Below, one piece after another: positions 3,155-50,442 of a stretch of 64,000 nucleotides of DNA (the first letter of the stretch is position 1; the number at the start of each line of letters is the position of its first letter). The stretch is from NCBI RefSeq assembly GCF_001194135.2, contig NC_069008.1:15217667-15281666 (forward strand), written 5' to 3'. The translations under genes were made by a program, and so were the position numbers. The notes beneath the pieces are model-generated. The model was not told where the DNA came from. It saw nothing but the letters and a program-made list of their open reading frames with translations, and made no database searches. Source of the stretch: Octopus bimaculoides (Eukaryota).

Positions 3155-4240
3155 CTACTCTTTTCTTTTCTCTTCTTTATGAATACGTTTGTGTGTAGAA
3201 AGATTACTATTCCAAGAGAATGATTTACCACAGACATTACAGTGAAATGGTTTCTCTCCTGTATGAGTACGTTTGTGTGCAAGTCAAGGCACTACTGTGA
3301 GCGAATGATTTACCACACATATCACAGCGATATGGCTTCTCTCCTGTATGAATACGTTTGTGAACAGTTAAGGTGCTAGTGAGAGAGAATGATTTACCAC
3401 AGATATCACAAGGATATGGTTTCTCTCCTGTATGTGTACGTCTGTGTAAAGTTAAGGTACTACTCTGAGAGAATGATTTACCACAGATATCACAGTGATA
3501 TGGAGTCTCTCCTGTATGAGTACGTCCATGTAAAGTCAAGGTAGTAATGTGAGAGAATGAATTACCACAGATACCACAGTGATATGGCTTCTCTCCTGTA
3601 TGAATGCGTTTGTGTGTAGAAAGTTGACTAATTCAAAAGAATGATTTACCACAAACATCACAATGATGTGGCTTCTCACTTGTATGAATACATTTGTGTC
3701 TAGGTAAAGCACTACTATCAGAGAATGATTTATCACAGATATCACAGTGAAATGGTTTCTCTCCTGTATGAATACGTCTGTGTGTAGTTAAGTGACAATT
3801 ATTAGAGAATGATTTACCACAGATATCACACTGATATGGTTTCTCTCCTGTATGGGTACGTTTGTGCACAGTTAAGTTAACGCTGTGAGAAAATAATTTA
3901 CCACAGATATCACAGTGATATGGTTTCTCTCTTGTATGAATACGTCTATGTGCAGTTAAGTGACTACTGTTGGAGAATGAATTACCAGATATCACAATGA
4001 TATGGTTTCTCTCCTGTATGAACACGTTTGTGTATAATTAAGACACTATTGCGAGAAAACAATTTACCACAGATATCACAATGAAATGGCTTCTCTCCAG
4101 TATGAATACGTTTGTGTACAGTTAGGTCACTTTTTCGAGAGAAGGACCTTTTACAGACATCAGTCATATGAAGACTTCTTTATGTCTTTTATCATATCTT
4201 CATGGAAAATCAATTCTTCAAGCTTCTCACTCTTTTCCAT
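3155..4240 (-). pseudogene. ZNF-2: 12-finger C2H2 pseudogene
   Basis: Conserved ATG at 4240. Lesions: 2-bp deletion in finger 1 (GAC TGA), 2-bp deletion in finger 3 (ATC TGG TAA), in-frame TGA in finger 7 and a 1-bp insertion in finger 11. Original stop TAG at 3157-3155. Confidence 0.9.
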
Positions 4241-5482
4241 TATTTTTCTCCTTGAATCACAATGTATATATATATTGTTCTTGTTTTCCTTCTTATAGTT
4301 TACTCTTACAAAGAATATGCTTTGTACATCATTTTCTTTCAGTTTTAAAAGATTATAAATATTGAGGATGTATCTTCAGTTATCCCAATGTCATATGATA
4401 TTCTGAAATAATAAAGAAACATCAGTGTAATATATGGAGGCTACTTAAAAAATACAGATTCAAAAGTGGGAAATTTACCTGAACAACTGAACTTATAATT
4501 TGACATTGTTGTTTAGCCCCGAGCAGAAATACAATTAAAAACATTCTATCTTGTTTTTCTCTTTAGCATTGTATATCTAGGATATAATAATGCACTCATT
4601 TACAATTGTGACATGGTGTGACTGTGAGGAAACAGAAATGCAAACACACACAATTATGTTTTCGAAAAATCATTGTTTTACCCAAAACTACAATGTTATT
4701 TTGTGTTTTTATCATTTTATTCCTGTTACACTCTTCCAGGCACTTCTTCTCCCCTATTATGTAGGAACCCCTAACTTACCATCTTGAGTATTACACATGA
4801 TTAATGCTTCAAAAATAACACCAGTTGTAGGCATTAGAATTTATCATTTTAGAGAAATCAGGGAAGGGTTTAATGTGAACAGTGTAATTTCAAATCAGGT
4901 TCAGGGCTACCCCACAGATAATCTGAAATTGATGTCAGATCACTAAGAAGCAACCTTCAACTTTAATACTAATATCTGTCGTAATTTTCATTGTATTAAA
5001 AGATATTCATTTAATTTCATTCCAGAAAGGAAATGCAGAGTAGTCCTCAAAATTTAATTTTTTGCAACAAGATTGTAATCTACATCATAAAAATTTATGA
5101 AGAAAACCCAATCAGCATATCTACACAAATGTGTCCACCGTCCCAAATTTATTTCCTCAGAACTTTCAGAAAAATGGATATTTATTAGTGAAATTTTTAC
5201 AAATACACTTCAGATAGTGCAGATTCTGATCATATCAGAAATTATGAGGGAAAATTGTTTTAGATTCATTTATTTTTCGTTTGAGTAATAGAAAAGGTTT
5301 TTCAGAAAGATCCCAATGGTGGAGATGTGCTAAGAACAACAGCTAAATCACTCTCTCCATTTTTTCAATAGTGAAACCATATTCAATACCGTATTTACGA
5401 ATTTGTTTCTCTCATTATAGTACATGAGATCTTTTTTAAAACCTTTTTCTATTTCTTGAACGAAATATAGATGAATCTTACA

Positions 5483-5779
5483 CCTAGTACACTATTTGTT
5501 CTTCCATTTTTGTGACGGGAGTGGGTGGAGATAATTCACAGGATCCAGTAATCCCACTTTGACAGCCGATCACAAAAATGAAAAAACAATAGTGTGATAG
5601 GTGTAAAACATGTAGTAAACGAATATGAAAAAAAAAAAAAAAAAAATGCGCGCTGGCGAACGAGAGAGAGGACTCGGGAAATTCAGACCTTGACCTTTAA
5701 ACTCCAGTGTTGCTGGATCGTGTGAATTATCCGAGTCTGCAACCGGTTACAAAAGTTGAAAAACAAATAGTGTACTAGG
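5483..5779. mobile_element. Foldback MITE in ZNF-2 intron 1
   Basis: CCTAGTACACTATTTGTT at 5483 and AACAAATAGTGTACTAGG ending at 5779; further inverted match GATAATTCACAGGATCCAG / CTGGATCGTGTGAATTATC. Right end abuts a gap. Confidence 0.6.
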
Positions 5780-47974: not shown

Positions 47975-48141
47975 GGCACTACTTAAATACAGAGGTCCCG
48001 ATTCAGCATGTAACGTTATGAAAGGGAAGGTTAGGGTTACGATGTCGTTGCACGTCCACACAGCTTACATTTAAAATGTTTTGTACGTAACACCTGTATT
48101 TAAGTAGTTCTGTTAAGGGACCTCTGTATTTAAGTAGTATC
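47975..48141. mobile_element. Small MITE in ZNF-10 intron 1
   Basis: Perfect 22-bp inverted repeat ACTACTTAAATACAGAGGTCCC at 47978-47999 and 48117-48138; flanks AATTTTTT / GATTTTTT. Confidence 0.7.
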
Positions 48142-48942
48142 GATTTTTTTTTTCAAATTATCTTCACCACGCATTTGAAAATGATGTGGGTGGCGAAGCC
48201 TTTTATAAAAAGTTAAGAAAATCTGATTTCTACCCGCTTTTACGACACCGAACACTATTACAATTTTTGAGTAACATGTAACCGTCGTAAGAGGATGAAA
48301 GTAAATGGATATTGCAGTACACTTGGCCATTTTTATGAGGAATGGGCCACAAGTACTTTTCACCACCAGAGAGATGAGTCTTAACGCTTCTGCTGCAGAG
48401 TGCAGGTTTTCTTGAGTACAACGAGGTGCCAGGCATCTCAGTCTTTGTCATATCACCTGGAAAGTTCAGCATCCTGAGTTTGCTCTTCAGCACTTCATAC
48501 CCTGTCTTCCAGGATGTCCCACTTCCACATGTTCCATCTACTTTTTAGAGATTAGCACTTCTTTATGTAGCTGTGAGACATACAGCTCAGTTGTTAGGGT
48601 ATATCTTTAATTCTACAGATTATCTCAATAGAAACGAATCTGTATGTTTTAAGTAGCCTCCACATCTTACACTGTTGTTTTTCTATAATTTCAGAACATC
48701 AGATGACACTGACATAACAGAAGAAACCTCCTCAATATCTACCATGTTTTAAGGAATAAAAGAAAATATTATATGAAACAGATGTATAACATTGTTTCTA
48801 CAAATCTGGTAGAATTCCTGTGAAACGTTTGCTAGACAAAAGTAGCAATGGACAGAAATGCAGCAGTAGAAGTATTTGTGAGTAATAAAGTATAAAAACA
48901 AAAGCAAGAAGAATATATCAACTGTGATTTGAGAGGAAAATA

Positions 48943-50442
48943 ATGGAAAAGAGTGAGAAGATTATAGAATTGATTTCCCCTGAACACATGATAAAACAGA
49001 GGAGATCATATGACTGTGATATCTGTACAAAGTCCTTCTCTCAAAAAAGTGACCTAATTATACACAAACGTAGTCATACTGGAGAGAAACCATATCATTG
49101 TGATGTCTGTGGTAAATCATTCTCTGACAGTAGTAATTTAACTGCACACAAACGCACCCATACAGAAAAGAAACTACATCATTGTGATATTTGTGGTAAA
49201 TCATTCTCTAACATTAGTCACTTAACTGCACATAAGCGTATTCATACAGGAGAGAAGCCATATCATTGTAATATTTGTGGTAAATCATTTTCTATAAGTA
49301 GTCATGTTACTGCACACAAACGTACTCATACAGGAGAGAAACCCTATCATTGTGATATTTGTGGTAAATCATTCTCTGGAAACACTGCCTTAACAAAACA
49401 CAATCGTATTCATACAGGAGAGAGACCATATCATTGTGATATCTGTGATAAATCATTCTCTCAAAGTATTCATTTAACTACACATAAACGTATTCATACA
49501 GGAGAGAAACCATATCATTGTGATATCTGTGGTAAATCATTCATTGCAAATAATTACTTAACTAGGCACCAACGTATTCATACAGGAGAGAAACCATATG
49601 ACTGTGATGTCTGTGGTAAATCATTCTCTTATAGTTCTGGCTTAACTAAACACAAAAGTATTCATACAGGAGAGAAGCTATATCACTGTGATGTCTGTGG
49701 TAAATCATTCTCTCAAAGATCTCACTTAACTAGACACAAACATATTCATACAGGAGAGAAACCATATCATTGTGATATTTGTGGTAAATCATTCACTGAA
49801 AATAGTTACTTAGTTATACACAAACGTATTCATACAGGGGAGAGGCCATACCACTGTGATATCTGTGGTAAATCTTTCTCTGAAAATTCTGCCTTAACTA
49901 ATCACAAACGTATTCATACGGGAGAAGAACCTTATCATTGTGATATCTGTGGTAAATCATTCTCTCGAAGCAGTAATATAGCTAGACACAAACGTATTCA
50001 TACAGGAGAGAGGCCATACGAATGTGATATCTGTGGTAGATCATTCAATGAAAATCGTGATTTAACTAGGCACAAACATATTCATTCAAGAGAGAAATCA
50101 TATAACTGTGATGTCTGTGGTAAATCATTCTCTAACCGTAATGCCTTGACTTCACACAAGCGTATTCATGCAAAGGAAATGCCATATCCCTGTGATATCT
50201 GTAGTAAATCATTTTTTGAAAGGGGTCACTTAATTGCACACAAGCGTGTTCATACAGGAGAGAAACCATATTGTGATATTTGTGGTAAAGCATTGACTCA
50301 TAATTATCAGTTGAGTAGGCATAAACGTATTCATACAGGAGAGAAACCATATCACTGTGATGTCTGTGGTAAATCATTCTCTCAAAATAGTGACTTAATG
50401 AAACACAAATATATTCATACAGAAGAGAAAGGAAAAGGATAG
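48943..50442 (+). CDS. ZNF-10: C2H2 protein, 499 aa, 17 fingers
   Basis: Intact ORF; acceptor at 48693-48694; one linker is one residue short before finger 16. Confidence 0.92.

Follow-up and report, generated by a model that had tools for sequence, protein, structure and literature searches.

A short N-terminal leader shared by tandem C2H2 zinc-finger genes of Octopus bimaculoides as a candidate docking motif

A glutamate-rich N-terminal sequence of 28 residues without known homologues, named FiNZ, was described in 2023 for zinc-finger (ZNF) proteins of cyprinid fish; it is the defining feature of about 700 tandem ZNF genes in the zebrafish, is encoded by a separate exon ahead of that for the fingers and is described as highly conserved, and a family-wide knock-down of the FiNZ-ZNFs led to transposon de-repression (PMC10547256). 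Here we analyse a window of 64,000 nucleotides (nt) of the Octopus bimaculoides genome (NCBI RefSeq assembly GCF_001194135.2, contig NC_069008.1, positions 15,217,667 to 15,281,666), which contains a tandem cluster of poly-C2H2 zinc-finger genes whose proteins begin with a common leader of 22-24 residues in front of the first finger. FiNZ is the closest analogue of this leader. Both are short (22-24 versus 28 residues), N-terminal, rich in glutamate and without a known domain, and both are restricted to one lineage, where they mark a tandemly duplicated, fast-evolving poly-ZNF family with diversifying contact residues. There are also differences. The octopus leader starts with MEKSEK, unlike FiNZ with MAFIKEE (a start derived from the morpholino of the paper and the only part of FiNZ compared), it forms a single open reading frame (ORF) with the fingers and has its sole putative splice site in the 5' untranslated region (5'UTR), and it is moderately conserved, with a ratio of nonsynonymous to synonymous rates (omega) of about 0.45. 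Since sequence, exon placement and phylum differ, we do not count the leader as a member of FiNZ, and a profile search with the leader gave no fish proteins. For the FiNZ-ZNFs transposon repression has knock-down evidence, whereas the octopus family is known here from its sequence alone.

KRAB (PF01352) is likewise N-terminal, is found on tandem C2H2 arrays in clustered, lineage-specific expansions and serves as the model for the function proposed below. It has about 40-75 residues that fold on binding, lies on separate exons and recruits TRIM28, whereas the octopus leader has 22-24 residues in the same ORF as the fingers. No Pfam KRAB match was obtained with the full protein or with the leaders at E<=10, whereas in a search with the full-length protein of gene g25348 Pfam KRAB was listed for most of the matching vertebrate proteins. 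The closest analogy in size and position is the SNAG peptide of Snail, Gfi1 and Scratch (consensus MPRSFLVKK), which is very short, lies at the extreme N-terminus of C2H2 proteins and is itself a disordered docking peptide for the co-repressor LSD1/CoREST. SNAG is basic, in contrast to the acidic-hydrophobic leader (MEKSEKLEELI), and the two are unrelated; a direct reading of 14 leaders against the MPRSFLV-type motif revealed no SNAG sequence. In addition, SNAG proteins are ancient single-copy regulators, whereas the leader family is a recent tandem expansion. ZAD, SCAN and BTB are N-terminal modules of C2H2 proteins for protein-protein contacts as well. They are folded and have at least 60 residues, unlike the leader, which is predicted to be unstructured; none of them was among the Pfam matches, and just 22-24 residues are available ahead of finger 1. 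Finally, single C2H2 fingers with adjacent beta-strands are reported from Drosophila, with an atypical finger, its flanks and a CGx-Phi motif as characteristics (PMC12774644).

A preliminary description, made from the letters of the window alone, had reported the shared leader at six places, and at each of these coordinates the peptide translates exactly (6/6). A six-frame motif scan added three copies absent from that description, with the ATG at 269, 14010 and 19954 on the minus strand, so that a leader or its remnant heads all nine finger arrays of the window. When the initial 17 nt of the leader were searched as a degenerate DNA pattern, we obtained 14 matches compared to 4.1 expected, and all nine true copies had two mismatches or fewer. 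The recurrence of the leader is paralogy rather than chance. The genes and their parts are the following.

198..269, minus strand: leader of g269, a pseudogene truncated after finger 1
4169..4240, minus strand: leader of g4240, with a 2-bp deletion directly 3' that breaks the frame (YD*CL*)
3240-4168, minus strand: broken finger array of g4240
8371..8442, minus strand: leader of g8442
8287..8370, minus strand: finger 1 of g8442
7354..8442, minus strand: coding exon of g8442, leader and 12 fingers, 362 amino acids (aa), intact
13975..14010, minus strand: leader of g14010, cut down to its first 12 codons
12183..14010, minus strand: coding region of g14010 with the gap 13033-13451 inside; merged ORF of 346 aa with 11 fingers
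19883..19954, minus strand: leader of g19954, missing from the preliminary description
19799..19882, minus strand: finger 1 of g19954
18857..19954, minus strand: coding exon of g19954, leader and 12 fingers, 365 aa, intact
25277..25348, minus strand: leader of g25348
25193..25276, minus strand: finger 1 of g25348
24008..25348, minus strand: coding exon of g25348, leader and 15 fingers, 446 aa, intact
30284..30355, plus strand: leader of g30284
30356..30439, plus strand: finger 1 of g30284
30284..31606, plus strand: coding exon of g30284, leader and 15 fingers, 440 aa, intact
44021..44092, minus strand: leader of g44092
43937..44020, minus strand: finger 1 of g44092
42752..44092, minus strand: coding exon of g44092, leader and 15 fingers, 446 aa, intact
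48943..49008, plus strand: leader of g48943, 22 aa
49009..49092, plus strand: finger 1 of g48943
48943..50442, plus strand: coding exon of g48943, leader and 17 fingers, 499 aa, intact

The cluster thus comprises six intact and three decayed or altered genes. The gene at 4240, the first example of the preliminary description, is a broken one that loses its frame right behind the leader, and g14010 lost leader residues 13-24 and, with them, the first Cys pair of finger 1 through an in-frame deletion. The ORF of the intact genes runs without interruption from the leader through 12-17 fingers, of which finger 1 is atypical and the following 11-16 are canonical, at an exact period of 28 aa. This places them among the tandem Kruppel-type C2H2 poly-ZNF genes, which are characterised by C-x2-C-x12-H-x3-H repeats with TGEKP-type linkers, and a Pfam search with the full protein returned zinc-finger families only (zf-C2H2, 4e-68; zf-H2C2_2, 2e-90). 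Behind the last finger the six proteins have a C-terminal tail of 0-4 residues, and the leader is, as had been claimed, the only non-finger sequence of the intact genes. The preliminary description had also not recognised the leader as a named domain. This agrees with our searches: the leaders gave no Pfam match at E<=10, the zinc-finger models do not reach into them, and a leader profile gave no match in the PDB sequences except for a meaningless one at E=2.2.

For the detection of relatives we used HMMER with a profile of 28 columns (leader plus YDCD) against 1.84 billion representative proteins. Eight proteins were found at E<=0.001, and five of them are true matches with the leader at or near residue 1.

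XP_036366877, Octopus sinensis: true match to the HMMER leader profile
XP_036358517, O. sinensis: true match to the HMMER leader profile
XP_036356129, O. sinensis: true match to the HMMER leader profile
CAI9742764, Octopus vulgaris: true match to the HMMER leader profile
L005, a metagenome contig of 619 bp from ENA: true match with a degenerate leader and finger (…NELCEKLKGLIFHEEMAKEIGKSSRQCDLFKKSFSHKGNL…)

The copy on the metagenome contig presumably stems from octopod DNA in the sample. The three remaining ones (P0125, P0130, P0132) are proteins with repeats or coiled coils, and we set them aside as matches by composition. The representatives were clustered at 50% identity with most family members hidden, and five is a lower bound. 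No convincing leader was found beyond the genus Octopus among the 1.84 billion representatives, in a search whose 24-residue profile could miss diverged cephalopod versions; within the reach of this search, the leader is restricted to the genus. Three word-indexed protein searches were uninformative on the distribution: a profile of leader and finger 1 gave 21 candidates, none from a cephalopod, in an index that misses the family, the full-length g25348 protein retrieved mainly vertebrate poly-ZNFs, and a profile of 42 columns with the O. sinensis and O. vulgaris variants gave zero matches though these proteins are in the collection. None of the six intact proteins of the window has an exact entry in the protein collection, which indicates that the genome is unannotated there or that its genes are modelled in another way.

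Inspection of the relatives' loci yielded further copies at L001:10001, 22815 and 35558, at L002:10001 and ~300 (ATG lost), at L003:10001 and at L004:248. Every array at these four O. sinensis and O. vulgaris loci, which lie on different chromosomes, carries a leader or a remnant, and many copies are broken. A BLAST comparison of the window with these loci reached 81% identity at most, the level of paralogs. The copies L003:10001 (O. vulgaris) and L004:248 (O. sinensis) are an orthologous pair in which a 6-nt deletion removes M16-I17; this variant may be a shared pseudogene because the finger arrays are disrupted downstream in both. Two of the O. sinensis gene models at L001 and L002, XP_036358517 (spanning 69 kb for 305 aa) and XP_036366877 (744 aa including a long non-finger tail, named 'RE1-silencing transcription factor-like'), look like annotation chimeras across neighbouring paralogs or frameshifted arrays. 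Since the leader is present on all nine arrays of the window and on all arrays at the four loci of the other species, and since its omega is below 1, we assign it to a functional, not homology-based, class of lineage-specific ZNF-associated N-terminal motifs, which is characterised by a conserved shared leader.

The leaders are 22-24 residues long and start with MEKSEK, MERCEK or MEESEK. In the tree they fall into three subtypes common to the window and the other species: two of 24 aa, marked by His13 and by Pro13/Leu23, respectively, and one of 22 aa. Counted over 14 copies from three species, position 7 is L, I or V in all 14, position 10 is L, V or F, position 11 is I, V or T, position 16 is M or I in 12 of 12 and position 17 is I in 11 of 12. 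The preliminary description had noted that these five hydrophobic positions are kept even in the most diverged paralogs; the conservation extends over the 14 copies, but the paralogs in question are young, with 5'UTRs that align at 68% identity. On the tree, positions 1, 2, 5, 9, 14, 16, 17 and 24 show 0-1 changes and K18 shows two, so that M1, E2, E5, E9, E14, M16, I17, K18 and S24 have 0-2 changes compared to about 4-5 nonsynonymous changes per codon expected under neutrality. Substitutions at positions 7, 10 and 11 stay hydrophobic, bar one Thr at position 11, and positions 8, 12, 13, 15 and 19-21 have 3-6 changes. At the conserved sites, radical changes occur in copies that are decayed or altered (M1I/E2G/I17R at L002:~300; I17T/K18E at L001:22815), and deletions within the leader occur in g14010 and in the L003/L004 copies. 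Ser24 is invariant in the 14 copies and has basic residues at -1 to -4 (RKSS, RKLS, RRNLS, KSKLS, QRRS, EMRS). We take this arrangement to resemble a site for basophilic kinases, and the Met-Glu N-terminus is presumably a substrate for NatB-type acetylation.

In all nine copies of the window a pyrimidine tract with CAG or TAG, followed by AATATCA(T/G)A(T/C)GACA, is located 152-355 nt 5' of the ATG. This conserved element has the appearance of a 3' splice site at which the coding exon begins, and the sequence from there to the ATG would be the 5'UTR part of the exon.

19955..20113, minus strand: predicted 5'UTR part of the g19954 coding exon, from the putative 3' splice site to the ATG
270-421, 4241-4402, 8443-8603, 14011-14171, 25349-25703 and 44093-44437, minus strand: equivalent predicted 5'UTRs
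30016-30283 and 48695-48942, plus strand: equivalent predicted 5'UTRs
19955..19984, minus strand: conserved 30 nt 5' of the ATG (..TTGTGATTTGAGGAGAAAAATA ATGG), shared by all copies, those of O. sinensis and O. vulgaris among them

Stop codons in frame between the putative acceptor and the ATG were found in eight of eight copies tested, the ATG has a good Kozak context with A at -3 and G at +4 in all eight, and the NCBI coding sequence models of the O. sinensis relatives begin at the same ATG. Based on these three findings the leader is with good probability the true N-terminus of the protein. Each predicted 5'UTR contains 2-6 upstream ATGs. One of them is conserved, is positioned 8 nt past the putative exon start and opens an upstream open reading frame (uORF) of 4 codons (ATG ACA TTG GGA TAA in the His13 subtype); in g30284 it is gone (ACG). 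The Pro13 and 22-aa subtypes possess about 90-200 nt of additional sequence in the middle of the 5'UTR compared to the His13 subtype (25349-25703(-), 30016-30283(+), 44093-44437(-), 48695-48942(+)). This additional sequence can be aligned among g25348, g30284 and g44092, and with g48943 over a short stretch only.

To measure the constraint on the leader, 14 leaders and first fingers were aligned by codon and analysed with a codon model of the GY94 type on a neighbour-joining tree, using our own script. Neutral evolution of the leader, which the preliminary description had named as an outcome that would speak against a role of the peptide, is rejected: its omega is 0.48 (95% confidence interval (CI) 0.29-0.83) with twice the log-likelihood difference (2dlnL) to omega=1 at 6.7. 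With the seven intact genes alone the value is 0.43 (95% CI 0.23-0.82), and finger 1 has an omega of 0.54 (95% CI 0.35-0.85; 2dlnL 7.0). In the leader, nonsynonymous changes are suppressed and the synonymous rate is about neutral (scale 0.9-1.0); 74 aligned columns of the 5'UTR change at 0.95x the neutral rate of the model. For five divergent lineages of the window the identities of the segments are as follows.

5'UTR: 68% nt identity, aa identity not applicable
Leader: 77% nt identity, 57% aa identity
Finger 1: 79% nt identity, 64% aa identity
Fingers 2-6: 74-83% nt identity, 64-78% aa identity

These rates bear on the idea that the signal is a nucleic-acid element at the start codon, composed of the purine-rich end of the 5'UTR and the GAA/AAG-rich first codons, with the peptide being incidental. 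Such an element could act in translation control, in splicing enhancement of the large exon or in small-RNA targeting. Across species the final 30 nt ahead of the ATG are indeed kept, and they evolve at 0.65x the neutral rate (2dlnL 7.3), the region is strongly purine-rich, and the 5'UTR contains upstream ATGs and the short conserved uORF. An element at the RNA level is contradicted by the leader itself, because its synonymous sites are near-neutral while nonsynonymous changes are suppressed, and we regard this explanation as improbable.

The first finger had been given a signature of its own, YDCDxCK(K/R)SFSxKxxL. In this strict form the signature fits only g19954 and, after repair of the frame, g4240; the relaxed form [YH][DN]CDxCx[KR]xFSx[KAT]xxL fits all seven readable first fingers. 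The peculiarity of finger 1 is evident from a comparison with 85 internal fingers. Position 2 is D or N in seven of seven first fingers versus H in 65/85 internal ones, position 7 behind the second Cys is non-Gly in all seven (Lys in five) versus Gly in 73/85, and a Lys at helix +1 is present in 6/7 first fingers versus 1/85. These signature residues (D2, K7, K8 and the helix +1 Lys) belong to a constrained class of sites, and helix positions -1, +2, +3, +5 and +6 form a fast class with omega 1.75 (two classes versus one: 2dlnL 44.8). By this substitution pattern finger 1 behaves as an ordinary DNA-reading finger and not as a dedicated non-DNA module, because the base-contacting positions diversify fast. 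Its framework oddities may reflect the place at the edge of the array, where an upstream linker is absent and the finger is spared from internal duplication and homogenisation.

Structure prediction with AlphaFold2 was performed for the first 106 residues with an alignment of seven sequences. Residues 1-10 have a predicted local distance difference test (pLDDT) score of 43 and residues 11-20 one of 53, compared to 70-84 for the three fingers, and the leader shows just one short low-confidence helix at residues 13-20 without packing. The low score fits a disordered motif. An amphipathic-helix reading was rejected, since the hydrophobic moment is no higher than in shuffles and the helix has low confidence. 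The leader appears as a disordered tail of mixed charge, in which a few acidic and hydrophobic residues are fixed as anchors.

The same data concern a possible role of the leader, alone or together with finger 1, in homo- or hetero-dimerisation among family members, a function that SCAN, BTB and ZAD domains have. The conserved hydrophobic positions 7, 10, 11, 16 and 17 and the constrained family-specific residues of finger 1 (D2, K7, K8, helix +1 K), which are located outside the base contacts, would agree with such a role, and dimerisation by a finger plus its flank has a precedent (PMC12774644). Yet the predicted helix does not pack, the hydrophobic moment does not exceed that of shuffles, Pro13 breaks any long helix in most subtypes, and the contact residues of finger 1 diversify as in a DNA-reading finger. 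Oligomerisation is thus an unlikely function.

With regard to its origin, which would be compatible with any function, the leader could be the relic of a decayed N-terminal finger or linker without zinc ligands. By eye, L10-x2-H13-x2-M16 of the His13 subtype resembles the pattern L-x2-H-x3-H, and the distance to the next finger is similar. However, local alignments of the leader with the fingers of its own genes at the nt and aa level were no better than shuffles, the Pfam zinc-finger models miss the leader at E<=10, and position 13 is Pro and not His in most subtypes. With no similarity to fingers above shuffles we rejected the decayed-finger origin, to which we assign hardly any probability.

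An effector or cofactor-binding role of the leader is plausible by analogy. The reading that we tentatively prefer is that the N-terminal tail is disordered and contains a short motif for docking, which would supply the effector function, likely by co-repressor recruitment. The motif would be M-E-x2-E-x-[LIV]-x-[ED]-[LVF]-[IVT]-x2-E-x-[MI]-I-K-x3-5-S within the mixed-charge tail and would provide an otherwise all-finger DNA binder with its effector function. The whole subfamily would recruit one cofactor in common, most likely a co-repressor by analogy to KRAB, FiNZ and SNAG, and the variable DNA specificity would come from the fingers, finger 1 included. A further-reaching proposal, which we consider doubtful, sees in the leader a counterpart of KRAB or FiNZ that evolved independently and is specific to Octopus. 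It would be a docking peptide of about 24 residues for the recruitment of a silencing cofactor, and a large part of the octopus C2H2 expansion would be defined by it.

The main rival to the docking motif is a generic N-terminal cap, a possible explanation to which we give considerable weight; the other three are less likely. According to it the leader is the inherited start of a young, fast-duplicating family under weak non-specific constraint and without a dedicated partner, useful for the initiation context, for solubility or spacing before finger 1 and perhaps for nuclear import or as a kinase site at Ser24, with similarity that is mostly shared ancestry. The youth of the paralogs, whose 5'UTRs have 68% identity at an about neutral rate, would fit a cap, as would an omega of 0.43-0.48 like that of finger 1, the lowest aa identity among the coding segments and a leader without fold, amphipathic signal or known motif, in which M1-E2 and S24 with its preceding basic residues are the sole invariant positions. 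On the other hand, E5, E9, L10, I11, E14, M16, I17 and K18 are kept in all subtypes and in three species while their neighbours vary freely. A pure spacer would not need such kept internal residues, and these proteins contain no alternative effector sequence.

Several observations weigh against the docking motif. The constraint on the leader is moderate, with an upper limit of 0.83, and is not stronger than that on finger 1, and no coding segment is less conserved at the protein level than the leader with its 57% aa identity. A model with two classes of leader sites (omega 0.26 for 58% of the sites and 0.97 for the rest) was only marginally, and not significantly, better than a single class, with a 2dlnL of 5.6 at 2 degrees of freedom (p ~0.06), in a sample of about 14-15 copies. 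Much of the visible similarity of the leaders appears to reflect the youth of the paralogs, which is indicated by 5'UTRs that still align at a near-neutral rate. The constraint on the 30 nt before the ATG comes close to that on the leader, so that part of the signal could belong to the nucleic acid of the start region. Furthermore, g14010 keeps an open frame of 346 aa despite the loss of leader residues 13-24, the structure prediction suggested in the preliminary description gave no confident fold, and the helical hydrophobic moment of the leader is not above that of shuffles (p 0.07-0.9). For known docking peptides, a comparison by eye with ELM patterns showed no clean match of the leader to CtBP, NR-box, CoRNR, eh1 or SIM. 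The leader sequence PEDMI is a near miss to the CtBP motif PxDLS, and it is missing where Pro13 is replaced by His.

The window is AT-rich (35.5% GC) and contains eight N runs, and every leader and finger 1 is at least 500 nt away from an assembly gap. Five gaps fall within the cluster, and four of them are intergenic (5780-6580, 11294-11338, 26881-26890 and 45368-45377). The sole intragenic gap, 13033-13451, lies within g14010 and is surrounded by a perfect 371-bp duplicate (12662-13032 and 13452-13822, 100% identical). Removal of the gap and of one copy of the duplicate results in the continuous 346-aa ORF with 11 fingers. Due to the perfect duplicate and the restored ORF, this gap is probably an unmerged contig overlap and not missing sequence. 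Long ORFs with a YEYVC repeat at 101-427(+), 12812-13477(+), 13602-13979(+) and 50135-50512(-) are antisense readings of the finger arrays and were rejected as separate genes. Three further elements are located outside the finger genes.

50452-50814, plus strand: mariner-type transposase fragment (Pfam HTH_48, Mos1 transposase, E=1e-8), adjoining g48943 downstream and continuing into the gap 50952-51803
54117-54761, minus strand: ORF of 215 aa without a Pfam match
58270-59496, plus strand: pogo/Tigger-like DNA transposon in three broken ORFs (Pfam DDE_1, E=1e-13, and a weak HTH match)

Octopuses have among the largest C2H2 zinc-finger expansions known. A non-finger sequence associated with octopus ZNF proteins is not mentioned in the cephalopod and metazoan C2H2 literature examined (PMC12513265, PMC10547256), and the leader is apparently an undescribed handle on this expansion. 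The shared motif could be used in a search for a cofactor and for defining and counting the subfamily in cephalopod genomes. Since the start region (GTGATTTGAGGAGAAAAATAATGGAAAAGAGTGAGAA) is nearly identical among the paralogs, one reagent could knock down the whole family, as was done for FiNZ. If the motif turned out to be inert, the proteins would be bare finger arrays that act by occupancy alone, which would be informative too. Taken together, the octopus leader would add one more independent case of a lineage-specific ZNF family with a short acidic N-terminal tail.

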